Below, piece by piece: positions 17,401 to 36,242 of a stretch of DNA of 64,000 nt. Location of the stretch: assembly GCF_000143415.4 (NCBI RefSeq), contig NW_003314284.1, forward strand, positions 1,346,693-1,410,692, in the 5' to 3' direction. This stretch comes from Selaginella moellendorffii. Taxonomy: Eukaryota; Plantae; Lycopodiophyta. The notes below the pieces were generated by a model. The model did no database searches. It was given only the letters and a program-made list of their open reading frames with translations, and had not been told where the DNA came from. Numbering within the stretch: position 1 is the first letter of the stretch; the number at the start of each line of letters is the position of its first letter. The translations under genes and the position numbers were made by a program.

Positions 17401-19000
17401 AAGAGATGTGGCTTTTTATCTTGAGTTGATATTCTAGAGTTTAGATGCAAAAGATACAATATAAATACATAAATTTCATGCAACTTGGGTAAGGAGTTTA
17501 TTTCTTGCAGTGGTTCTGATTTTTTTGCATAGAAGAATGCTCTTGATAAATGAATATCTATATATATTTTAATGACTACGTAGTATTACATCTATATATA
17601 TTTGCAGTGTATTGCAATTACATATGAAAGCACATATATAAGCTTCTATACATAAGACCTATAGTGTTTATGCAAAATTCACACAATAAGAAGCCTTAAT
17701 TTTGTAAAAATTCTCTTCAAATTAAGTGGATTTGAGGTGAAAGAATTTTTAAGGCATATAATCTAGAATTTTAGTATAGTTTATAAGATTTTGGGTTTCC
17801 CACAATTAATTTATAAAAAGTAGCTGCCACAAATTATTGCTTCTAGTTTTAAGATTTTGTAACATGATTTATTATACAAGACATTCAATTAGTTGCAGGA
17901 TTTGTAACAACTTTATACTTTATTCCTTAATCTTGCATTTAAATGTGTTTTCCCCTCAAGAGCATAAAAAATGGGAAGGATAAGGCACCTTGTATTATAT
18001 GGTAAAATATTTAAGATCTCTTTGTTAAACTCTTGAACAAGATTACAAACAATAGCAATTTATAAGTAAATGCTTGTATGAATGTATAGATACTTTATTG
18101 CTTTATTGTTTTTTTGGTCGAAAGGATTCATTGAGCTCGGCTTTCTTGAACAGATATATTAGTTTGGTTATACTATCTCACTCTATGAATGAATCGTCAA
18201 TTGATATATCAAGTTAAAATATGCCACATTACTGTAATTTATATTTATATGCCTATTATTAATATTTATTTTTTATTTTTGTCTTTGGAGTGAGATGTTT
18301 CAAGAAAATAACAAAACTATAAATCTATTTTAAAAATATTTAAGATTAGTATCTTAACTAATAAATTTTAAGCTGAAATAAATAAAATCTATGCAATAAG
18401 TCAAAATAACTAGAATATATTATTATTTAATATTGTACAACTCATGTATTCTTCTTTTATTACTTATTAATCATGTTAACAAAATATTTAATTTTATATT
18501 GCTCTTTTTAATTTATGAATATTTAGAATACTTTTATATAAGAGTATATAATCCTTTTTAAAATCACTAATTTACATTTGTCACTAATTTACATTGGACA
18601 CAATTATCATGTAAATCATGTAATACAAACAAGCATTTTCAAAGGTTCTTCACCATATTTTTTTTTAAAAACCTAATCTCATGAATATTCCTAGATTGGC
18701 CATGAGATTGGTTATTTTTAAAATCCTCTTGCTAATGAAGGCATAATTTATTTTATAAAACATTCTTTATAGATAATTTAAAATTTTAGATTGTTTTTAA
18801 CAAATAGCATATTATAAAACTTATAACTTCTTAAAATGTTTTATTTTAAAAAATAATTATATATAAAAATTGATAATTAGAAATCAATATTTTAAAGTTC
18901 TAGACTCAATTTTATAGAAGTTTTATATAAAACTAAATATCTTTTTTGAAGATACAGAAAATATTCTGAAGTGCATAACCGACCGTTTTGAATTTTATTT
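14410..19000. repeat. AT-rich, CpG-poor region of probable degraded transposon debris
   Basis: Very high AT, no intact ORFs, decayed coding-like repeats (EVEV/P units at ~16830-17090), imperfect inverted repeat at ~18663-18723; family not identifiable. Confidence 0.45.
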
Positions 19001-19009
19001 CTAGGGCTC

Positions 19010-22000
19010 ATGGAGCATGGATCATCGCGCAAGTCCTCGGTGGTGAGGCCCTTCTCGCTCCAGCTGTCGGCGTCGCTGGTCGAGGATCTCTACGCGCCGA
19101 TCGCCATGCCGCACCCGATGAGCAGCTCTTCTAGCTCTCAGGAACAGGAAGAATCGCCTCCATCGCCGGTTGATGAGTCGGCGCCACGGGCGAGGAGCCC
19201 GGAGGAAAATGCTGGCCCGGGATTTTGTCCAATGTGTGCCACAAGGCGTTCCTTTGGTGATGTCAGCCATGAATCTCCATCCACTTCCAAGGAGAAATCC
19301 CCTCCCTGGACTCTAGTAAGTTCCCTTTTTCTACCGTGGAGGGATCTTACGTTCCATTCAGGTTCTTCGCTTCAAAGCCATCAGTGTTACGATGGATCAC
19401 ACCGAAGTTGGTCCGGGCTATGATACCTTTGGCAAGAAGCTACTTGGATGCCTTCTAGGAGTTTGCATTAAGCTGGCTCGTTCCAAGAAGAAATCCAGCA
19501 AGATCAAGGTTCTCAAGGACGTGAGTGGCTATGTGATGCCGGGTTCCATGACTCTTGTTCTCGGTCCGCCAGGTTCGTGACCTTGATTTTTGTTTCTTTT
19601 GAGACCTTTTCCTTCTAAACAGGCAGTGGGAAGAGCACTCTCCTCAAGGTAGCATGGTGATTGTTTGGAGATATGAAATGCTTTGTTTCATATGCTACAT
19701 TGGCTGTTAATTCTACAGACAGTGGTGATAACAGGTGATGGGAGGAAAGCTACGTCCTAACAGACGACTCAGGCTGGAGGGCGTTGTGCTTTACAACAAC
19801 GACCCTTTGTCGCCCAGACTTGCTATAAAGCGGCCCATCGCTTATGTGACTCAACACGACAACGTGTAAGTAGGCTCGTTGATGTTTCTCAGCCGTATAA
19901 ACTGGCCTACACTTGCAGGCATTTGCCGTTTTTCACAGTCCGAGAAACTATCGAGTTTGTTCAACGGTGTGCTCTATGGCAGCGTTGTATGCCACAGTCC
20001 GATGCTGTACAGGGCCGGGACTCGTACGTGGACTACATCCTACACATGTTTGGTCTCAAAAAGATTGAAAACGAACGGGTTGGGACTCTTGCTGATGGCA
20101 TCAAGGATAGCGACCGAAACAGACTGGCAACTGCGGAGATTGCTATGGGTACATACTCTGTGTTGCTGTATGATCAGACAAGTTCTGGACAGGACTCGCT
20201 TATCACGTATGACTTGCTTCAAATGCTGCAAAGCGTGGTTCACGTACAGCATTGTGCTGCCGTCATATCGCTGGTTCAGATTTCACCGGAATCCTTCGAT
20301 CTTTTCGACCGTGTTATCCTTCTCAGCGAGGGTGAGGTTCTCTATCAAGGCCCGCGTGAATGCGTCGAGAGCTACTTCTTAAAGCTTGGGTATGTGTTTG
20401 GCACACTTTGTTCTTCGTTTTATTTTTGCCTGGCAGGTTCAAGAAGCCCGCTCACGTAGACTCTGGAACATTTTTACAGGATATTGCAGCTGGCGAGGGT
20501 GGACAGTATTCACAGCAGCCTTCATCGCTTAGTATTGAGGAGCTTATAAAGTTCTATAAAGGATCGGACTACTATAAAGACGTTTTTCGGCTTGTTTCAA
20601 CTGAAAAGGCGACTCAAGCAACCTTATTCAGAACTTCTAGCATTCGTGCTTCGCTGCAAGGGAATGGTATGGAAAAGAATATGTGTTCTTTTGCTACTAA
20701 AATGCAGTGAGCCGTGCAGATGTGTTGGTGACGGAAGCTCCGAGTGTAGAAAGTTGTGCTTGCGTTCGTGTTGGCGACAAGGTGACAGGAGTTTGCGTGC
20801 GTAGTGAAGAATTTCAATATGTTGAGAGCTCGGATTCAGCTTCGAAAGTATCCAACATGTTGAAGGCATCGTATAGCTCCATCCTTTTACAGTTGGAGCG
20901 AAATCTCGATGAGGTTGGGCATCTCGTAATTTGAAAGTCCCTTTATGTCTTTAGTTTGCAGGGAGGCAATGCTATGTATTATCAAAGACACTTCGGATGG
21001 CAACAATTTTGTTCGTGGTGGTTGTCGACCTGGTGTTTGATCCGGCGTCAAACAATATTTGTAATGCGACTTAAGGGATTAGCTATTGTACGACTTCTCC
21101 AGGTAATGACAGCGTCCGATTTAGTCATGCTAAATGCTGACTCTTCAGATTCTTTTAGTCGGCTTGTTCACTGGCTCCTTGTTCTATCATAAAGGAGGCA
21201 GACTTGATCAATACGAAATGAATTCTATGAGAACGATTGGATTTATATCTATGATGACTTTGATGTTAATTAACATCGTCCAGCTTCCGGTCCATATGGT
21301 GTTTCATCGACCCGTTTTCTACAAGCAGCAAGGTCAACACTTATTTCCTGTTTCTTCGTATGTAGTAGCACATGCCATTTTGAACATTCCTCAATCAGTT
21401 ACAGAGGTATGCTATTATTTTCTCGTATGACTTGAGCGTTGAAAGTATTACAGGCACTGCTTTACAGTTTGTGCGTGTATTTTTTAGCTTCGCTGTCTAA
21501 AGAGAAGGCAGCACATTATGTTCAGTACTTAGGATTGATTTTTGTCACTGCTTATTTGGGCTCACTTTGGATGTTGTTGGTAGGTGCCATTGCACCAATG
21601 CTGGAAGTAGCCACAACGATGGGAGGTATGACTTTTTCTGAGATAATGTAGCTTCAGCAACATGTCTACTTGTTTTTACAGGTTCATTTGTCGCTTTGAA
21701 CCTTCTATTTTCGGGCTCCACGATTATTCCAAGTGTAATCAGCTGGTACTGGCGATGGGTTCTATACATTACACCAACTCGTTGGGGAAATGTCATTTTT
21801 ACATCGACTCAAACCGACAACCGCTATGAATTACCTTGCACACTTTACCGCACGTATCCATTCTGTCTTCTTCATCCAACACTTTCTCTTGGCCAAGCAT
21901 TTCTCAAGTATTATGAGCTACAAGCTGGTGGAAAAAGGCTTGTTCTCGCATTCGGAGTCATCGTTGCATATATTCTGGTTCTCATTTATTTGGCATATCT

Positions 22001-24041
22001 TGCGTACAGCAAAGTCCGGATACAAGAAACGGCATCGGCTATACCAAGGCAGAAACAGTATGTTCGCGGCCCCAACAATGTGGAACAAGCAGAGAACGGA
22101 GGTACACGAGCACCTGGGAGGTGGACTTGCAAGTTATCTGTCAAGCCTGTAACGCTCTCCTTTCACCAGCTGAGGTTCACCAGGCGGGACGCGCGATCTT
22201 CTTTTGAGCAAGTAGTATTGGACAACGTCTCTGGCTATGCCAAGCCAGGAACAATGCTAGCAATTGCTGGGGGCACACGGTCGGGCAAGGCAACGTTACT
22301 CAACTGCATTGCAGGCAGGCTACCACCCGGCAAGCTCGAGGGTGACGTTTCTTTAAACGGTTTGAAACTGGACAGACTCGCCATCTGCCGGATATCTGGA
22401 TTTGCTGAGAAGTTGGAAGCTCACCAACAGTATCTTACTGTCAGAGAGTCCCTGGAGTTCAGTGCAAATCTCAGGCTGGGAAAACAAATCAGTGCGGACG
22501 ACAAAGCTCGGCATGTGACGGAGGTCCTGGAACTTTTGGGATTGTCAGCTATGAGCAATCAACTTGTTGGCAACTTGAAGCTCGTCACTGCTCGAATCCA
22601 GGAGACAAGAAGGAAACTTACTATAGCTGTGGAACTCGCCGTCAACCCCGGCATACTTTTCTTGGAGGATCCCACGGCGCAGCTGGATGGCACTAGCTCC
22701 AGAGAGATTCTGAGACTGCTCCAGAGTGTTGCTTTAAGCGGGCGTACTATCATCAGCATGCTGGATCATCCCAGTGGAGAGGCACTCAGCGTGTTCAACG
22801 ATGTGTTGGTACTAGCTATTGGCGGTCACACAGCCTATTTCGGCGCCGTTGGCTGGAACTGCAAGCAAGTGCTGCACTACTTCACGTCAGTGCCGAGTTC
22901 GCCACCTTACAACGAGCAGTGGAACCCTGTCACCTACATCCTCGAAGCACTTGGCGGAGGCATAAAGGAGCGAAAACCATTGCACGACTTCTCTCAGCTG
23001 TACCAGTCCAGCCCTCTACATCAGGCAAACGCGGAGGTACTCGAGAGGCTTCTCAAGCAGCAGCCAGATCCCGAGCTCAAGAACATCAGCTCTCGATACG
23101 CAGCTTCGTTCAAGACGCAGGCAGCCATGGTGTTCCTCCGGAACCAGCGTTTCTTATGGAGGAACGTGACATACACACTCCGCCGCCTCCTTGGGACCAT
23201 TCTCGTCGCTCTCGTCATGGGAACACTCTACCTCAACATCTCCGTGGAAAAGCTGCTGTTCATGACGTCCGCCAGCCTCTTCCCGTATATCCAGCTGATT
23301 ATGATCTCCGGGCTCACGGCCAACAACGTTATACCGCAGCTCGGAACGGACAGGCTCGTCTACTATCGAGAGAACCGAGCAAGGATGTACTCCCCGATGC
23401 TGTATCCGCTGTCCTGGGCCATCGCCGAGGTTCCATACTTGCTGCTCGGCACACTCGCCTTCGTCGGGATTGGAAACGGCCTGGCCAACCTTGCCGTCGA
23501 CTCCGTGTCCGCGTTCGTCCAGTACTGGATCGGCCTGTTTCTCTTCACCCTGGCCGTGACTTACTTCGGCATCTTCGTCACGCTGCTGTTTCCAAACTCG
23601 CTGCTGGCCATGACGGTCTCGTCGATATCGACTTCGGTGTGGGTGGCGTCCTCGGGGGTCTCCATTCCGCGCTACAACATCCAGTTTTACAAGTGGCTCT
23701 ACTGGATCAACCCGTATCAGTACGCCGTCAATATCCTCACCACGACTGCGTTCTACTGCGACACCGGAACTCCGGCGTGCAATGCTTGCACGATCGGCGC
23801 GAGTTGCCCTGGATGCAAGTGCAAGAGGCTGGTCGACTTGGAGAAGAAGCTGGTGCAAATCTATGGGCCGGTCTTCAGCCAGTTCATTCGAGCAAGCTTC
23901 GTGTGGGAGAGGCTGAGCAAGGCAAGAGTTCTTGAGAAGCACAGGATTGGGAAGGACTTCCTGGCTCTGGCTTTCATGGTGCTGCTCTTCGCGGTCCTGG
24001 CGATCGTATCCTTCGCTCGACTCAAGCACAACAGGAAGTAA
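19010..24041 (+). CDS. Full-size ABCG/PDR-like transporter, copy 1 (NBD1-PDZ-like-TMD1-NBD2-TMD2), degenerate ATPase motifs
   Basis: [118 protein letters not shown]; introns in 5' half, single ~2.36-kb terminal exon. Confidence 0.9.
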
Positions 24042-24530
24042 AACTCACGACGTTCTCGCGACGCTCTGGGCTATGACGAGAACTTTGGAGGACTAGAGTG
24101 AGGTACTTCGCAGTTTAGTTTTCTAAATTTCCTTCCCAGATGGTGGACCTTTCACGATTGAGCTCAAGGCTTACGTACTTCAAGACGACAATTTTTTTCT
24201 TTTCTTTTTTCAGCTTTCGTGCGAAACTTCGGAGGAAAAAATTAAGATCGATGGTGGCGGCTTGCTTGGATAATTGCGAGCGTCGTGGACTAACATATGG
24301 GAAGAAATACTATAAAATTTCTAGAGATATGGGAGCTATATGGAGGTGTTTGAGTTTGACTAGGATCTCTCTCCAGAGAGATAGGGCTTTTACGAATTTC
24401 AACGCAGTGACGTTTTTTGGAAATCTGGGCCAGGTAGAGCTTCTTCCAGTGATCTCTGCGCTTCTTTCTCCTTGATCTAGGAAATTTGGAGAATTTCTGT
24501 GAGAATACAGCTCCCGATCGTCGATCGGGG

Positions 24531-27500
24531 ATGGCTGCCACCGCGGATGATGGCGCCGATGATCGCCGCCACGAAATGGAGGCCGCGAGAGTCTCCAATT
24601 CCTCGTCCCTCCGCGAGCTCGTCGTCGATGAGGAGCTGCCAAGGGCTGTGAGCCTCAGCATTGCGAGATCGAGCTCGCTCAAGAGCGATCTGGAGCAGTA
24701 CCACGCTGCGACGGATCCATATGACCTGGTACCAGATATTTAAAATTTTCCTTGTTCTTTTCTTTCTGTCCGGGAAGATCTTTACCAGGCGAGCGTTTGC
24801 AGGTGATAAGATTCAAGGGTGTCACTGTGACCGTGAACAGTCCTCAGCAGCAAGCGCAGAGCTATGAAACGTTTGGAAGGAAGATTGTGGGCTGCTTTCT
24901 CGGTCCTCTAAAGCTTCTCGCGAAGAAAAGAGATCAACCGAGCAGTGTCAAGGTACTTGACGACGTGAGTGGCTACGTTATGCCTGGCTCCATGACTCTA
25001 GTGATCGGTCCGGCAGGTAATTCTCCAAAACTTAACGAACTCTAGCTACATTTTCACGGTTTTTTTCTTTTTTTTCTTTGTTCTAGGAAGTGGAAAGACT
25101 GCTCTTTTGAAGGTAATTTAGTGGTTTCTTATTACAATGTGACTTATCCATCTTTCTGTGATTATACCAGGTCCTTGCCGGACACTTTCATCCCAGCAAG
25201 CTCGTAAAGTTTGAAGGCCAGGTCTTATACAACGACTCCGTATTGACGCCAGATCTCGAGACCAAGCGTCCGATTGCTTATGCTACAGGCCTTCACAACG
25301 TGTACGTAATCTTTGTTTTGTTTTCTTCTTGTCTGAACTCCATTTAATGCTTTTTATCAGCCACTTGCCGGTGCTTACCATTCGAGAAACTCTCGAGTTT
25401 GCCGAGAAATGCACGCGACGGCTTCGACCGCAGGAACTCACGGCCCAAATGATCAGGTGCTTTGCTCCGGACTTGGCAGACAGCGACAATCCATTCCTGG
25501 AATATGTTCTACAGACTTTCGGCTTAAAGCAAATCGAGCATTTGGTGGTCGGGCCTCTCCTGAAGGAATCAGCGAAAGCCAGGCTTACGACAGCAGAGAT
25601 CGCGATGCGGACTTTTTCAGTCTTTCTATACGATCAGCCAGCAACGGCAGAGGACTCGTTACGCCTTTATGACAGGCTTCATAATCTCTTAGACACAGTG
25701 ATTCGTGTTCAAGAATGCGCTCTAGTAACTTGCATGGCTCAGGTAGCTCCGGAAGTTTTCGAGCTTTTTGACAGGATCATTATCTTGTCCGAGGGCCAGA
25801 TGATCTACCAAGGTCCTCGACACAGTGTGGAAAACTACTTCTTCAAGCTTGGGTATGTCTAAACTCTCTTATCTGCTGACGAACTAACTTCCTTGTTGCC
25901 TGCCAGATATAAAAAACCTAGCTATGTCGATCCTGCTGTGTTCCTTCAAGATATTTCTGCGGGGTCTGGAGCTGGATACCTGATGCCTGGTTTTACAAAA
26001 CTGGGAATTCCGGAGCTTGTTGTATCTTATAAAGCATCCGACCATTTCAAAGACGTCACGCGTATCGTTTCCAGCAAAGACGTGACTCACACTTACATGG
26101 CCGAGACTATCTCCGATATTGAGATCTCCATCCAGCATGACACTCTGAATGGCCCGGGTAACGATACGTGTTCCTCTTTAGTGTCGAATTATAAGGTTTT
26201 GTAGGTGTTTACGTGACAAATGTCTCCGAGGCCGGAGAGATCATAACCAATGGAGCGGTTCGAGTGGGAGACGAAATCACTGCTGTTGTGCTGCCTGACG
26301 GTAGTACTCACTACGTTAGAGGTGGCTCTCCAGCCGAACAGGCGGCTCAAGCTTGTAAAGTTGCCGACTTGCTAAACTCGAGAGAAGGATCACTTCACGT
26401 GCAACTGGAGCGTAAAATGCAAGAGGTGAGAACTCATACCAAATCTTCAGATGTTAATGGTAATCTCATGGAGTTTTCCTGTCCAGAAAGAAACCGGTGC
26501 GTGCTACAAAAAGCGGTTTGGATTTGTCAACGTGAAGGACTGGCTATGGTCTACGCAATGCCTTGTGAAGCGTCAATTTACATTTGCGATTCGTTTCAAA
26601 ATCCTGATCATACTTCGGCTGTTCCAGGTTTGAAAAGCTCTAGACTTTTTCTTAGCTTTCAACAATCGTATTCGTACAGATTACTGTTCTTGGACTCTTT
26701 GCTGGTTCTTTCTTCTACAAGAAAGGCGGCAAGATCGATCAATATGAGATGATTGCGCTACGAACCCTTGGCTTCGTCTCGATGATGGTCTTGATGCTTA
26801 TAAACCTCACACAACTCCCAATCCACCTCTTGATTCATCGGCCGGTTTTCCAAAAGCACCGCGAGCTGCATTTCTTCCCAGTTTCTTCATACGTCGTGGC
26901 TCAAGGCCTCGTGAGTCTCCCGCAATCACTTCTCGAGGTAAGAGTCGCTTGATTGTCGGAAGCTTCACACATACATGGTCATTCTCTTGAGCAGGCAATA
27001 ATCTATAGCATGTGTACGTACTTCCTCGCGGGCCTCTCACTGGAAAATGCTGCGCACTACTTCCAGTATTTGGCGCTGATCTTTGTGATAGGATACATGG
27101 GATCGTCGTTCGTGTTTCTCGTCGGCGGATTCGCTCCGCTGCTGGAGAATGCCGCAGCTTTGGCAGGTTTGAAACACCTTTTGACAAAACATTGGGTTTA
27201 TTTTCTTTCATCCACAGGACTTTTCATCCTCGTGTGTCTTCTCTTCTCTGGCGTGATTTTGCTACCCAGTGTGACACCCGCTTACTGGAAATGGATGCTC
27301 TACATCGTTCCAACGCGCTGGGGCAACATCATCTACTCCTCGACTCAGATGAAGACCCGGTACGACCAGCCATGCACGAGCCATCTCAACTTCCAGTTCT
27401 GTTTGGTAAACCCAAGGCTCACGCTCGGCCGGGCCTTTATCAAGTTCTATGACTTGGAAGCCTCCGGGGGAAGGCTGGTGCTCGCGTACGCAGCAATCGT

Positions 27501-29565
27501 CATCTTCATCCTCGCTCTCAACTTCCTCGCATACCTGGCGTACAAAAAGTCCCGCTTGCCGGAGCTGGCGCCATCTCCTGTCAGGAAAGGTCAGCTTCAT
27601 CCAGTTGCCGACGAAGAAGCTGTAAAACCAGATCCGGAGGAGCTGAGCAGAGTAGAGGACGGTAGCCTCCGCGACGGTCCCGGTCAAGAAGAAGCAGCCA
27701 AGTGGATGGAACTCCATCTTCCTGTGAGGCCTCTAGTTCTCACGTTCTTCGACATCACTCTTCCGACAGGGCACCTGAGCCTGATCTCCGGCTATGTCAA
27801 GCCAGGCCAGATGCTAGCTCTCGTCGGAAGCACTCGCGCAGGAAAGTCGACACTCCTCAAGTGCCTGGCCGGCAGGATGCCCTCGGAAGGCGAGGTACTC
27901 GTCAATGGTGTCCGGCTGAAGAAGACGTGCTTCCACCGCATCTCTGGCTTTGCCGAGAACGTCGAGATGCACCAGCCGTATCTCACAGTCCGAGAGTCTC
28001 TCGAGTTCAGCGCCAACCTCCGGCTCAGGCGTCACATAAGCTCCGCCGACAAGGCTCGTCACGTCGATCTCATACTCGAGCTCACAGGCCTCTCCCACGT
28101 AAGCAACAAGCTAGTCGGGGTGTTCCAGCAGATGAACAAGCGACCGCGGGAGATCACCAAGAAGCTCACCATAGCCATCGAGCTGGCAGCAAATCCCAGC
28201 ATCCTGTTTCTCGACGATCCAACTTCGCAGCTGGACGGAGCCAGCGCGAGAAACGTTCTGCACCTCTTGCAAACGGTGGCCATGAACGGACGCACGCTGC
28301 TCGTCACCTTGCACCATCCCAGCGCCGAGACACTAGGCCTCTTCCACAGCGTGCTGGTCTTGCGGGAGGGGAAGCAAGTCTACTTCGGACCACCCGGTAC
28401 CAACGGCAGCCAGCTCCTCGACTATTTCACGGCCATTCCAGGCGTGCCACCTTACGACCCGCGGCGGAGCCCGATGGTGTTCCTGCTGGACATCCTGGGT
28501 GGCGGAACCACGAAGCGGGAGCCCGCGGCGGACTTCGTCTCCGCATATCATAACAGCCCACTGCAGCTCGCAAACGCGGCCGAGCTCCAGTCCCTGCGTG
28601 ACCAGAAAGACGACGGCCTCCACCATCTCAACTCCCGCTACATCGCCCCCTACAAGACGCAGTTCGCTATGGTGTTCCTCCGCAACGCCAGGTTCCTGTG
28701 GCGCAACGTCCGCTACACTTTCAACCGGCTCACGGGCATTGTCATCATCGCGCTCGTCATCGGCACACTCTTCCTCAACATCGACGTCGAGCGGTCCACC
28801 TCCATGCAGTCGGCGTCGCTCATCATGTACATCGAGGCCATCCTCATCTGCGCCACCACCGCCAACAATCTCATCCCGCAGCTCGGCACCGACAGGCAGG
28901 TCTACGTCCGCGAGAGCCGAGCTCGCATGTACACCTCGCTGCTCTACCCGCTGTCCTGGCTCGTCTCGGAGATCCCATACATCCTCCTGGGAACGTTCGT
29001 CTTCGTCGGGATAGCAAACGGGATGGCCGGCGTCGGAGTCGACACCTTCACGATGTTCCTCAAGTACTGGACGTGCCTCTTCCTCTTCACCATGGTGGTG
29101 GTGTGCTACGGCGTCTTCCTGGCCTGCGCAGCTCCGATCCCGACCATAGCCGTCACCTTCTCCTCCATCATCATGTCCATGTGGATCTCCTCGTCCGGCG
29201 TCTCGGTTCCCAGGAACAGGATCCGCTTCTACAAGTGGCTCTACTGGATGAACCCGTTCCAGTACACGATCAACATCCTCACCCCGACCTCCTTCTACTG
29301 CGACACTGGGACCCCGGCCTGCTTGAGCTGCGTCATCCGCCAGCCGTGCCCCGGCTGCCACTGCAAGAGGCTTCACGACGTCGAGCAGCTCCTGACCCGG
29401 ACCAACACCACCCGGCCTGCGTTCGTGTGGGATAGACTGCTGGCTACCAGACCCATCGAGATGAGCCGCAACCACTGGGACTATCTGGCGCTGTGTGGGA
29501 TGGCGCTCTTCTTCGCGGCGCTGGCGGTCACGTCTTTCAAGTTTCTCAAACACAACAGAGCTTGA
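24531..29565 (+). CDS. Full-size ABCG/PDR-like transporter, copy 2 (tandem paralog with same architecture)
   Basis: [101 protein letters not shown]; intron positions match copy 1. Confidence 0.9.
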
Positions 29566-29625
29566 GGTTCTCGCTTCCTTCAGCGTTATGCTTTTCCAAG
29601 ATGATTTCCACCAGGAGAATGTAAC

Positions 29626-32570
29626 TTAGTGGCCTTTGCTGGGACTAAAGGCGCCAGCGACGAACAGCAAGTTCCTCCTAGAAAACTACAGTGGAAAATA
29701 ACGGTGTAAATCAGCGTGTAACTACAAAGAAAAAGCGTGTTGTTACTCACTCTTAGTGTGTAGATTGGAGTCGATTTGGTTGGCAGTGTCTTCAACAATC
29801 GCAATCTCCTTGTTCTGCACAAACAGAGAATAAAAAAAACAAATACAAAGCTCTCAGAGCTTTAAAAGAAGATGATTAAAATACTCACTTGTCTGCAGTG
29901 ACTTTAGAGCTCCCGTTCACATCCCACAGTCTGACAGTGTTATCAGCGGAACCAGAAGCCAGAATGGACCCTTCGCCACTGGAGGAAAAAAAATCAAGAA
30001 AAAAATCAATCGTTTTTCTCCAGAGGCTCTTGCTACCTGAAAGCGAGGCTCCAAACGCAGCCGGTGTGACCCAGCAGAGGAGTCACGCAGCGGCTGGATG
30101 CCAAATCCCACATCATAATGGCCCCATCCTCGTCACCCGATGCCATGAAGAGTCCATCAGGGGACATGGCAATCGACACGATCATCGACCTGTGGCCTGT
30201 GAAAATGCGTACACACTCTCCAGTTTGTACGTCCCACAGCCTGACAGTCTTGTCGCTTGAGCCTGTAGCAATATAATTGCAATTGACATGCCACTGCACG
30301 CACTGCAAACGCATGCAGCAACTCGCTCAAGTTTATGCGAGGGAGAGAAACGACATAAGCGGAAAGGTAGAACTTACATCCACGTCTGAGAGATGGCCAG
30401 CCATTATCCTCAGCGGTTGCAATCTATCCATGGACCACACTCTTGCAGTCCGGTCGTAAGACGCGCTCGCGAAATAATGTCCCACTGGACTATACTGCAA
30501 GAGTAGCCGGAGATCAGACCGACTATAAGGCCAAAAGCCTGTCATACCTGAACATCCCAGACGGGATAGTTATGTCCTTTGTAGCAAGCTAAGTTGGCAT
30601 TCAGCCTGGTGCTCCAAAGGCGTACTTCAAGACAGATAGCAAAACGTTTAGCAAGCTCCTGCAAAGACCAAGATAACTCACTTGTACAATCTCCTGATGC
30701 TGATAGCAGTGAATCACCCTCAGGGCTAAAGTCCACACCATATACTGGGCCAGCATGTCCAACCAATCGTATGTAGCTGGAACTGCGACCCTCAAACTGG
30801 CCCTTGCCTACAAAACTGACGAATTGATGTTGGTCTTTTATTTAGAGACTGCTTACCAGCATCCGAATACATTGAAGGCTCGCCCATCTTTACCATGTCC
30901 CAGAGCTATAAGAAGTTTCTAAAGTCAATACACGCAACGAATAACAATTATAGACGTACCTTAATTGCCGAATCAGAGAATCCTCCAGCCAGATAAGCAC
31001 CGTCTGCTGATATTGAAGCACAGTTCAGGCTGCCAGTGGCTCCAAGTTCACCAAATCATTCTCAAAACTCATCATGCATCCAAACCTGTTGTTTGTGTTC
31101 ACAAATGTGTAACAGCTCACTGATGGCAACGCAGTGCTTCCGAGCTTGACTCTATTACGCAGGTCATCCAGAGCTTGCCGTTCAAAGTCGTCAGTCCTGC
31201 AGAGAAGCCAGTTCAAATTCCTCGTGTTGCAGAATTGAAAAGCTTACAGCAGTGGCATCGTCAACTCCGGCTTCAATCGGGGGACAGATCTGGCAGCCGG
31301 TTCGGCCTTTAATCCTTTACCTGCTTTGTCCCTTTTCACTCTCTTTACTTTCCCGTCGGCAGCTCGTTTCTAAGAATCAATCTCGTAAGACGATGGATAT
31401 CACAAAGGAAAAACAAGGAAATCGCGCACTTTAGCTTCGTCTGTTTCCGCATCTTTATCCGCGTCAGCCTTCTCCAGCTCTGCCGCTATTTGCTTCTCAA
31501 ACTTATCTTCCAAGGATCCTTCAAGAATCTGCATAAAGAAAATGAAGGTCCAGCCCAACCAGAAAGGAAATTTACCCACCCCCCAGTGAATCTCCTTTTG
31601 ATTTGTCGCTTCAACCACTGCCTGGACCTTTGCAGGAAGAGAGCTAGATTCATCATCGTCCACTAAAGCTGCTGGTTGCCCAGGAAGGACTGCTTTCAAC
31701 AACCTGAAAGAGTTAGTCCAATGGAACCGACAAACTAGAGACGACCTTTCAAGTTGATATGTGAATTGACGATCCCAAGCATTAACATTGATTCTGTGCT
31801 CTGGAGATATTGCAGAAGTAACTCGAAAGAATACTGCATTTTAAACGGGATTATGAGCATTCCAGTTGCAGCACGAAATTTCTACCTGGCACATCTTGAC
31901 GTGTACTTTGTTCTCTTGAAGCGTGCATGCAGTCTCGTTTTCCTACGAAAAAACCAGAACCTTGAGACTCCAAGCTCGACCCTTAAAAGGAAAGCTACCT
32001 GGAGGTGCTGAGGAGTAATCACTCCCTCTAGTTTCTGAAGATCTCTTATATGTTGCGGTTGATGGTCATCCCGAAAACTTTGGAAGAATTCTCGTGCTGT
32101 AACTTTCCCCTCAGCGGGAAAACAACCATGCCAAATGGAACAGCGTACCTTCTTGCGCGAAACCTTTCGCCACCAATTCCATGTAACAGTGCACAAACAC
32201 CGGATAGAGTATACGAAGTAGCTCAGTCTGCCACAGAGAGAAAAATTCACAAAACCTTGAAAACAAGCAAGAGCTGCAATAAGAACCTTGTAGAGATCCA
32301 GAGAAGAGTGAACCCAGTTTCGGAGCTTACTATAGCTCTCCTTGTACCGCCCAGCCTCATTGTCAGCTCTAAGAATTTAGCACGCAATGCTGATCAAAAC
32401 CCTACACGCTAGAGAAGAGATTACCTGGAATGGTTGATAATGTGGCTGATGGCGCCAGACGTATCGCTATTCTGCTTCTGCTGCTCCTGGAGCAGCGCAA
32501 TCTCGGCGACGCGGTACTTCTTGCGCCGCAGGTACTCTAGCACGACCTTCTCCTCTGCGTCCTCCTCCAT
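29626..32570 (-). CDS. TAF5: Transcription initiation factor TFIID subunit 5 (LisH-like N-terminus, NTD2, WD40 repeats), multi-exon
   Basis: MEEDAEEKVVLEYLRRKKY, LPSVSCYTFVN, GHAGPVYGVDFSP, YKGHNYPVWDV, HYFASASYDRTARVWSMDRLQPLRIMAGHLSDVD, NYIATGSSDKTVRLWD, LPTKSTPIYTLR-FSRRNLL. Confidence 0.93.
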
Positions 32571-34529: not shown

Positions 34530-35963
34530 TCAATCTCGCTTGCTTCGCTCGCGCGGAATCAGCTCTGGTAGGCGGCGGGGGGCTGGGAGTGAGGCGCGAA
34601 GTGATGGCCGCCGCCGATGGCTCCTGCTGCTTGTTGTTGAAGGTGGTGGGGGTGGTGGGATTTGGAGAAAGATGGTGGGATGTGGCCGGATCTGGTGTCC
34701 ACCGCCGCCAATCTCTCGCAGGATGGGCACATTGTAAGCGTGGCTGCAGGGAGCGGCATGTAAAAGTCCTGGGAGATGACGCAGGGAGGAGGGACTTTGA
34801 TGGCGCGGAGCTCCTGGAGCTCCTTTTGGAGCCGCCGGTTCTCCTCGGTCAGCGTCTCGCAGCAGCGCTTGAGGAGCTCGCAGTCGATCTCGGTCTGCTT
34901 GAGCTTGGTCCTGCAAGAACAAGAGAAACGAGATGAGCATCGATAGAAACGAGAAAAGAGAGCTTTGATCTTCTCCTACCTTGCGCGACGATTTTGGAAC
35001 CAGACTTCTACTTGGCGAGGCCTCAAATTGAGATGCTTGGCCAGTGCGTTCTTTTGCTTCTGCGAGAGCGAGAAAGAAAGAAAAAGATCCAGTCAGTCGA
35101 ATAGATCGAAACGAGATGAGACGTTCTTCCACTCTCCAACTCACCGGATTGAGAGTGCTGTGCTCTTTGAAACTCTTCTCGAGGAGAGCCGACTGCTCCT
35201 TGGATAGGCGGAGCTTCTTGCGCGGAGCTCCATCCTCCTCGTCACTCCCCCTGGAGCTGACTTCGCAATTGGCACGATCGCCAGCATCGCCGTCGCCGCC
35301 GCCGCTGGGGCGCGGATCTCTCTCCCTCTTGATGTTGACACTGCTGCTCTCGCCGCCCTTGCGAGCAATGTCGAACGCGAACGCGCCGGCGCTGCCGCCG
35401 GGCGAGACGCTGCAGCTCCGCGGGGACGATGCCCCTCCATCCACGTCCGCAGGGATCTCATTCATGTCGATGCCGCGCGGCGGCCCCGGCGACGCCCCCC
35501 TGCTCGACGAGTGCGTCTCAGGCGCAGCGATTTCCTCGCAATCTACACAGAAAGAAATGAATAATCGGTGAGAAACCCATCAAGACCCATTACTGGGATC
35601 GTCAATCTCACCATTGTGGATCCCCGAGCTCGCCGCTCCTCCAAACAGCGACTGCCGAGTGAGCTGCGACACGCAAGAGACGGGCGGTGGCGATTCGGTG
35701 TTGTGATTCGAGGCCGCCATCGCTGGCACCGCTGGAGCTCTCGGCAAGAGATCCAGCTGCACTGGAAAAGATCTTTGCTGCTGCTGCTGCTGCTGGTGAT
35801 GGTGATACTGCGCGGCCATCGCCATCTCGATCTCCTCCCTCCGCACGGCGCAAGAATTCTTGGCCATCGCGAAGCAGCTGCTGGTGGCAGTGTCGAGGCC
35901 CAGTGTGAGACCACTCGACATTGCTCGGAGGCGCTCGTGGTGGCTCTCCTCCCGTCGGAACAT
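34530..35963 (-). CDS. Class II HD-Zip transcription factor (HAT/ATHB2-like), 4 exons; start codon uncertain
   Basis: EAR motif [13 protein letters not shown], homeodomain [54 protein letters not shown], zipper [25 protein letters not shown] motif. Confidence 0.93.
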
Positions 35964-36242
35964 GGCGGCGCCGCTGCTCCTCCCGCCCACCTCTAGCGAC
36001 AACATGGGAAGCAAGAACGAGAAGGAACAAGATCCCCTCTTCGTTTTCCCTGATCTCTTGTGCTGGCTCGCTAAAACACGAAGAAGGCCGTGCGTGCGTG
36101 TGCTATCACTCCTCACAGCCAAACAAGAAATTTTCAAATCTCTCAACGGAGAAATCTAGAGCTCGCTGTGGCCTGCTAGCGATGATCCCACTGGAAGCTC
36201 TCTCGATCGATAATGTAGGGTTAAAAACCCTGGACCGTTTGG

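Follow-up and report, generated by a model that had tools for sequence, protein, structure and literature searches.

Introduction

Transporters of the ATP-binding cassette (ABC) class are understood as needing at least one hydrolytic site to reset each transport step, and the members that work as a channel or a channel regulator, CFTR and the sulfonylurea receptors, keep one. In the laboratory, replacing the catalytic Glu by Gln blocks hydrolysis, keeps ATP binding and abolishes transport; this substitution serves to trap ABC proteins with ATP bound. PDR pumps are degenerate at site 1 only and carry out hydrolysis at site 2 (PMC7756269). Site 1 here means Walker A and Walker B of the first nucleotide-binding domain (NBD1) with the signature of NBD2, and site 2 means Walker A, Walker B, Q-loop and H-loop of NBD2 with the signature of NBD1. 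In CFTR and the sulfonylurea receptors a degenerate site holds ATP unhydrolysed, and ABCB1 with both Walker B Glu residues changed to Gln, Asp or Ala has only residual ATPase activity (PMC7756269). Here we describe two tandem genes, copy 1 and copy 2, in 64,000 nt of Selaginella moellendorffii DNA (assembly GCF_000143415.4, contig NW_003314284.1, positions 1,346,693 to 1,410,692; the whole stretch is called the window), whose products have the architecture of PDR pumps and non-canonical residues at both ATPase sites.

Among solved structures, HMMER ranks Cdr1 and Pdr5 first and then ABCG1, G2, G5/G8, G16 and G25; the best matches, to Pdr5/Cdr1 (PDB 7p03, 9s2c and 9iuk), reach E values of 3e-69 for the half formed by NBD2 and the second transmembrane domain (TMD2) and 6e-29 for NBD1. 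Pdr5/Cdr1 and the Selaginella proteins have in common the order NBD-TMD-NBD-TMD, a degenerate site 1 (non-Glu Walker B1, non-LSGGQ signature 2) and an NBD1 H-loop that is not His. However, site 2 of Pdr5/Cdr1 is fully canonical (GxSGAGKTT, Q-loop Gln, LDEP and HQPS, with VSGGE in NBD1), and that of the clade to which the Selaginella proteins belong is not. This clade keeps the Walker A1 Lys, which is Cys in Pdr5, and carries a PDZ-like insert that Pdr5/Cdr1 do not have.

Two further groups are instructive. The PDR-type ABCGs of plants and oomycetes (the Arabidopsis ABCG29-43 class; oomycete proteins P0161, P0162 and P0164) have the same architecture and the same NBD1 flavour (GPPGSGK[ST], ..TTGE/TTAE, H-loop Gln). 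Both Walker B motifs of the oomycete PDRs read Asp-Glu, their signature 1 has S-G-G and their NBD2 is canonical, whereas the clade described here has Tyr-Asp-Gln, S-D-x-D, a drifting NBD2 P-loop and the PDZ-like insert; canonical plant PDRs are expected to share the motif states of the oomycete proteins. CFTR (ABCC7) and the sulfonylurea receptors (ABCC8/9) are ABC folds turned into an ATP-gated channel and a channel regulator, and ABCC NBD1 domains carry Asp for Glu, as Walker B2 of copy 2 does. They are, however, type I (ABCC) exporters without the ABCG fold, in which one hydrolytic site times the cycle, whereas neither site is canonical in the Selaginella proteins.

Both ATPase sites are non-canonical in both proteins

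We fixed the motif columns by HMMER alignments to Cdr1, Pdr5, ABCG2 and ABCG25 and by a 58-sequence MAFFT alignment, all of which agree, with conserved flanks (..TTAE, ..TIAVE, ..P.SGLD and LDAH) as anchors. The catalytic Glu that follows the Walker B Asp is missing throughout: NBD1 has Asp-Gln in both copies, and NBD2 has Glu-Asp in copy 1 and Asp-Asp in copy 2. S-G-G is absent from all four signature regions. The Walker A pattern GxxxxGK[ST] holds for NBD1 in both copies but for NBD2 only in copy 2, that of copy 1 having Ala after the Lys. The Gln of Q-loop 1 is present in copy 1 (AYVTQHD) and lost in copy 2 (AYATGLH), and the NBD1 H-loop residue is Gln in both copies, as is usual for NBD1 of PDRs. 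We scored five features of site 2, four from NBD2 (Walker A2, the Asp-Glu of Walker B2, Q-loop 2 and H-loop 2) and the S-G-G of signature 1, and found 0/5 canonical in copy 1 and 2/5 in copy 2. An earlier note on this DNA had listed motif strings for both paralogs and concluded that both composite sites are non-canonical while the Walker A Gly-Lys persists. All of its strings are present in the spliced models at the motif positions given by HMMER alignment to solved ABCGs, the alignment confirms the motif columns, and the Lys is found in NBD1 and NBD2 of both copies.

The two proteins might nevertheless be ordinary PDR pumps with the usual single degenerate site, the second apparent loss being an alignment error. 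A degenerate NBD2 signature and a non-His NBD1 H-loop are indeed normal in PDRs, both in the literature (PMC7756269) and in our outgroup proteins. Yet the HMMER alignments to solved ABCGs and the 58-sequence alignment agree on the columns, with anchored flanks, and the outgroups are canonical in those same columns, scoring 5/5 for site 2 in eight of nine PDRs and 4/5 in the ninth. We therefore regard misalignment as the least credible of the explanations considered, with next to no weight. The outgroup scores, together with PMC7756269, also bear out the premise of the earlier note that PDR pumps normally retain one canonical site. Nor are the substitutions due to chance, since the same columns are changed in 40-48 relatives.

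For NBD1 there is an engineered parallel. In a chain of Arabidopsis ABCG25 (PDB 8i3a), the sequence LVLDQP aligns residue for residue with FLYDQP of copy 2. The Glu-to-Gln change is artificial in ABCG25; in the clade it is natural, invariant (45/45) and under selection.

The losses are shared by an old land-plant clade

Searches with the NBD1 half found relatives of 1400-1840 aa with 36-45% identity in the liverwort Calypogeia, the fern Adiantum, Amborella, magnoliids, Dioscorea, grasses and many eudicots, and a third Selaginella paralog; a search with the C-terminal part added Diphasiastrum, Taxus and panicoid grasses. Our outgroup consisted of oomycete, fungal, amoebozoan and brown-algal PDRs. 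In a maximum-likelihood tree of the NBD2-TMD2 half, the relatives form one clade against these outgroups (SH-aLRT 100), the gene tree within it follows the plant species tree from liverwort to eudicots, and copies 1 and 2 are sisters (support 100). By this phylogeny, the clade is old and vertically inherited in land plants, and copies 1 and 2 are tandem duplicates specific to lycophytes or to Selaginella. Since the paralogs are sisters and the losses are ancestral to the land-plant clade, the losses they share were inherited and are not independent evidence. Hence, one argument of the earlier note, that the same losses in two well-diverged paralogs imply selection, falls away.

Across the clade, NBD1 is conserved. 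The Walker A1 Lys is present in 42/42 members (Lys or Cys in outgroup PDRs), and Walker B1 reads Tyr-Asp-Gln in 45/45, where the outgroups have Glu, Asn or Ser after the Asp. At site 2, S-G-G of signature 1 is found in 0/43 clade members (consensus S-D-x-D) vs. 9/9 outgroups, the Walker A2 Lys in 28/48 vs. 9/9, the P-loop Gly before this Lys in 8/48 vs. 9/9, and the Q-loop 2 Gln in 5/47 (mostly Lys or Arg instead) vs. 9/9. Walker B2, Asp-Glu in 9/9 outgroups, is mostly Glu-Glu in the clade and otherwise Asp-Glu, Glu-Asp, Asp-Asp or Asp-Asn, and the H-loop 2 His stands one position later than in the outgroups, which hold the canonical position. The site-2 score over 48 clade rows is 0 in 38, 1 in eight and 2, the maximum, in two, copy 2 of the window and the Taxus protein.

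The way in which site 2 was disabled varies by lineage: in lycophytes the catalytic Glu disappeared, and in seed plants the P-loop glycine, in many cases together with the Lys. With the Walker A2 columns left out of tree building, we counted at least six state changes for the Walker A2 Lys and at least eight for the Glu after Walker B2. Such drift is the pattern expected if catalysis at site 2 was lost early under continuing structural constraint. Family identity is 70% for NBD1 and 57% for NBD2; both TMDs are well conserved, at 56-67%, and their ABC2_membrane matches have E values of 1e-52 to 1e-68.

Cho et al. 2020 (PMC8359288) describe a group of 'V1-type' full-size ABCGs that diverged early and occurs in charophytes, mosses, Selaginella and Amborella; they report no members in other angiosperms. 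Our clade includes an Amborella member (P0129), as the V1-type does, and may be the same group; unlike the reported V1-type, it is found in many eudicots, magnoliids and monocots, and PMC8359288 treats neither the motifs nor the PDZ insert. In RefSeq, members of the clade go under names of the kind 'ABC transporter G family member 31/43/51'.

Environmental assemblies of JGI and Logan contain 'ABC' proteins of half size, 576-607 aa long (P0011-P0018), with GGANGSxAT, GYAERLDAH and FLEEP, the motifs of the grass type. We considered and rejected bacterial half-transporters as their identity; what they represent is the one large 3' exon of grass orthologs.

Both genes are intact, transcribed and under purifying selection

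Losses of this kind could also arise through relaxed selection in decaying genes, that is, in recent pseudogenes, or appear as artefacts of annotation. The public models of copy 1 are fragmented, in RefSeq as in GenBank (on one haplotype, a 152-aa gene made of exons 1-3, which hold Walker A1, and a 1317-aa gene; on the second, products of 488 and 890 aa), and copy 1 expression is low. Against decay, the DNA of copy 1 still contains a single uninterrupted 1499-aa frame, and this frame and the 1483-aa frame of copy 2 are intact in both haplotypes. The second haplotype (locus L001) is 98.4% identical over 10.8 kb with 49 gap positions, and none of the indels falls in either coding sequence (~4.5 kb each). 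Between haplotypes, synonymous and non-synonymous differences number 31 and 19 in copy 1 (dN/dS 0.19) and 25 and 10 in copy 2 (dN/dS 0.125), with binomial P under neutrality of 1e-8 and 4e-9, respectively. The splice junctions seen in RNA are those that preserve the long frame, and the orthologs are conserved from liverwort to eudicots. Decay is thus highly improbable, and the early pseudogenisation that the earlier note had named as a refutation of its idea is excluded by the spliced, transcribed and selected genes of both haplotypes.

RNA evidence came from one stranded raw RNA-seq run and from Logan contigs of three more runs, which belong to three other studies. Transcripts of both genes come from the + strand. 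For copy 1, we found the junctions 19315>19362, 19572>19623, 19648>19735, 19865>19919, 20389>20437, 20666>20720, 20913>20962 and 21102>21149, and a loose RNA end is compatible with 21406>21454. The acceptor at 20437, which keeps the frame, is therefore present in RNA, and the alternative acceptor of RefSeq isoform X2 at 20480 was not seen in the RNA reads or contigs. For copy 2, the first three junctions are each covered by 17-21 raw reads and by contigs of three runs. RNA depth of copy 2 is ~5-10 times that of copy 1. Within copy 1, depth over the 5' exons is about one-third of that over exons 5-6, and the junctions of these 5' exons rest on one contig and single reads. Two apparent joints in run X5, 23144>23688 and 25249>23111, were rejected as splicing because they are chimeric contigs between the paralogs.

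Some transcripts depart from the models. Intron 9 of copy 1 (21407-21453) is retained in one contig of run X1 (21232-21605), at the same point where RefSeq splits the gene on this haplotype. The 490-nt intergenic spacer (24042-24530) is transcribed at a low level, and one RefSeq model (P0192) splices out the copy 1 stop and enters an open reading frame at 24140-24475, so that read-through transcripts may exist. Between haplotypes this spacer diverges by 3.7%, vs. 1.4% for introns.

Comparison of the two paralogs gave dN/dS 0.16, a value that is unreliable with dS saturated. Synonymous divergence is saturated throughout (pS 0.73-0.84) except in TMD2 (23247-24038 vs. 28771-29562; pS 0.53, dS 0.93), where past gene conversion at the 3' end or strong GC3 codon bias could have lowered it; GC3 of copies 1 and 2 is 0.575 and 0.685, respectively. 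For the orthologs of Parasponia and Trema, the raw dN/dS of 0.50 is inflated by misaligned residues 808-931, where the gene models differ. Without this stretch dN/dS is ~0.3-0.4, with 0.26 for NBD1 alone and 0.32 for TMD2, all from small counts.

A clade-specific insert is predicted to adopt a PDZ fold

Between NBD1 and TMD1, the clade carries an insert of ~110-130 residues that outgroup PDRs (oomycete, fungal, amoebozoan and brown-algal) do not have. We modelled copy 2 residues 385-565 with AlphaFold2 from 33 family sequences (mean pLDDT 72.6). When the PDB was searched with this model by Foldseek, the 50 best matches were without exception PDZ domains, at probabilities of 0.99-1.00 and with target TM-scores of 0.32-0.63, most of them above 0.5. 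No Pfam PDZ family matched at E up to 0.1 in six clade members. On the strength of the model, we hold with moderate confidence that the insert adopts a PDZ fold, which suggests protein docking.

An alternative is that these proteins work independently of nucleotide, with the ABC fold as only a scaffold for the TMDs and the PDZ-like module; they could be, for instance, receptors, anchors or passive pathways for lipids or solutes. A vestigial site 2 would fit this explanation, as would a PDZ-fold insert specific to the clade. It meets a serious obstacle at site 1, where Walker A1 (GPPGSGK[ST]) and the Walker B1 Asp with its neighbouring Gln do not vary among 42-45 sequences that span ~450 million years. 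This invariance speaks for selection on nucleotide binding at site 1, and we consider a nucleotide-independent function improbable.

A probable ATP-binding protein that may not be a pump

The reading that we favour, with a probability of about 60%, is that the protein binds ATP for a structural or gating purpose and does not work as a primary pump. With its conserved P-loop, Gln always in place of Glu and a degenerate partner signature, site 1 would bind ATP without hydrolysis; the invariance of both P-loop and Gln points to selection for binding ATP without splitting it. At site 2, the working site of Pdr5-type pumps, the canonical residues are gone and still drifting, and this free drift marks the site as probably vestigial for catalysis. 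The bound ATP would then serve as a structural or gating ligand, and instead of pumping by primary active transport the proteins would be facilitators, channels, receptors or scaffolds gated by nucleotide, with the PDZ-like domain probably docking partners. The role put forward in the earlier note, a channel, sensor or regulator that binds ATP and hydrolyses it weakly or not at all, is likewise a candidate drawn from the motifs. By analogy, the Selaginella proteins are natural counterparts of the ABCB1 double Walker B mutants, with both signatures degenerate as well.

Several points weigh against this reading. In NBD2 of copy 2, GxxxxGKST persists together with the Walker B Asp and the H-loop His, and in some ABC proteins Asp in place of the catalytic Glu can permit slow hydrolysis, so site 2 of copy 2 may retain residual hydrolysis. 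Most angiosperm members have a Glu at the NBD2 catalytic position (Glu-Glu), and the H-loop His, shifted by just one residue, could still reach the nucleotide. Copy 1 may also give a shorter transcript without Walker A1. The Parasponia and Trema comparison, with its fairly high dN/dS, indicates purifying but moderate, not strong, constraint in at least one lineage. The canonical reference in the site comparison was drawn from non-plant PDRs.

Taken further, the retained residues would make these proteins slow but genuine ATP-driven exporters, in which Selaginella site 2 hydrolyses slowly via the Asp or a neighbouring base, enough for a low-flux substrate. Beyond the canonical Walker A2, Asp and His of copy 2, the well-conserved TMDs and the residual ATPase activity of the ABCB1 double Glu mutants (PMC7756269) speak for such a pump. 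What it has to accommodate is a partner signature in NBD1 without S-G-G, a Q-loop 2 that has lost its Gln in both copies, and a copy 1 with Glu-Asp, Ala after the Lys and a shifted His. The loss of the Walker A2 Lys at least six times independently within the clade is also hard to square with an energy-coupling site. We judge slow pumping unlikely, though it deserves more weight than a nucleotide-independent scaffold.

Gene models, neighbourhood and coordinates

We rebuilt the gene models of both copies by homology, with an S. moellendorffii protein of 1483 aa and its paralog as guides; in a word search, the long 3' exon of copy 2 had matched this protein, an 'ATP-binding cassette transporter', with 100% identity. 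All introns are GT..AG, are 46-86 nt long and lie at matching positions in the two copies, and there is no stop codon inside the copy 1 frame. A 26-nt micro-exon (19623-19648 in copy 1; 25087-25112 in copy 2) codes for the core of Walker A1. The two proteins are 52% identical and can be aligned end to end. The copy 2 model equals RefSeq XP_024534527.1 exactly, residues 183-1499 of copy 1 equal RefSeq isoform X1 of the other haplotype, and RefSeq isoform X2 of copy 1 starts at an internal, out-of-frame ATG.

Pfam assigns ABC_tran and ABC2_membrane domains, two of each and arranged as NBD-TMD-NBD-TMD, to the Selaginella RefSeq proteins and to their orthologs. A scan for Plant PDR_assoc (PF08370), a domain that follows TMD1 in PDRs, gave no match in the Selaginella proteins and 27.9 bits in the liverwort ortholog (cut-off 24.9), and the Diphasiastrum ortholog is annotated with this domain. 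Judged by sequence and domain order, both genes are full-size ABCGs of PDR architecture.

Downstream, on the minus strand, a gene for a TFIID/WD40 beta-propeller protein of 671 aa (~29590-32570) begins ~20 nt past the copy 2 stop, and a homeodomain-leucine-zipper gene (406 aa) lies at ~34590-36030, also on the minus strand; these coordinates were transferred from the gene calls of the second-haplotype locus L001, shifted by +14529. Upstream of copy 1, window positions 12000-20000 form a long AT-rich stretch (GC 30-36% vs. 45-57% elsewhere) in which GC skew swings strongly, from -0.21 at 12-14 kb to +0.21 at 16-18 kb.

Table 1. Positions of the two ABCG genes and of their motifs and inserts (window coordinates unless a locus is named).
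Feature	Position	Strand	Remark
ABCG copy 1	19010..24041	+	11 exons and TAA stop, 1499 aa
Copy 1 exons	19010-19315, 19362-19572, 19623-19648, 19735-19865, 19919-20389, 20437-20666, 20720-20913, 20962-21102, 21149-21406, 21454-21625, 21682-24038	+	
Copy 1 in second haplotype	L001 4569-9493		
Copy 1 Walker A1, GPPGSGKST	19563-19639	+	canonical; split over exon 2 and micro-exon 3
Copy 1 signature 1, GIKDSDRNRL	20097-20126	+	replaces S-G-G-type C-loop
Copy 1 Walker B1, LLYDQ	20163-20177	+	catalytic Glu to Gln
Copy 1 PDZ-like insert	20618..20904	+	NBD1/TMD1 interval; spans one intron
Copy 1 Walker A2, GGTRSGKAT	22269-22295	+	Lys kept, Ser/Thr to Ala
Copy 1 Q-loop 2, GFAEKLE	22398-22418	+	Gln to Lys; aligned with Cdr1 GYCQQQD
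Copy 1 signature 2, RIQETRRKL	22593-22619	+	
Copy 1 Walker B2, LFLEDP	22656-22673	+	Asp-Glu to Glu-Asp
Copy 1 H-loop 2, MLDHPS	22758-22775	+	His displaced by one position
ABCG copy 2	24531..29565	+	11 exons and TGA stop, 1483 aa
Copy 2 exons	24531-24728, 24803-25016, 25087-25112, 25171-25301, 25361-25852, 25907-26157, 26205-26425, 26487-26627, 26680-26937, 26995-27166, 27218-29562	+	
Copy 2 Walker A1, GPAGSGKTA	25007-25103	+	canonical; runs into micro-exon 25087-25112; junctions RNA-confirmed
Copy 2 Q-loop 1, AYATGLH	25276-25296	+	Gln lost
Copy 2 signature 1, LLKESAKARL	25557-25586	+	with Walker B1 (25557-25637) aligned with VSGGERKRVSIAE of Cdr1
Copy 2 Walker B1, FLYDQ	25623-25637	+	aligned with engineered LVLDQP of ABCG25 chain 8i3a
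Copy 2 PDZ-like insert	26088..26416	+	NBD1/TMD1 interval; spans one intron
Copy 2 Walker A2, GSTRAGKST	27826-27852	+	canonical
Copy 2 Q-loop 2, GFAENVE	27946-27966	+	Gln to Asn
Copy 2 signature 2, RPREITKKL	28141-28167	+	
Copy 2 Walker B2, LFLDDP	28204-28221	+	catalytic Glu to Asp
Copy 2 H-loop 2, TLHHPS	28306-28323	+	His kept

Significance

We found no description of the motif state or the insert of this clade in the open-access texts searched, including PMC8359288, PMC7756269 and PMC13257379. More tentatively than the favoured reading itself, and as something we hold less likely than not, this could be the first natural family with complete ABC-transporter architecture that is fully without ATP hydrolysis, in which one permanently ATP-occupied site and docking through a PDZ fold would make an ATP-sensing channel, facilitator or receptor. 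The gene family is widespread in plants, in crops and trees, and apparently unstudied, and the automated drug-pump names given to clade genes ('ABCG31/36/43-like') are probably misleading. An ABCG branch conserved for ~450 million years lets one ask directly whether the ABC-transporter architecture works on ATP binding alone.

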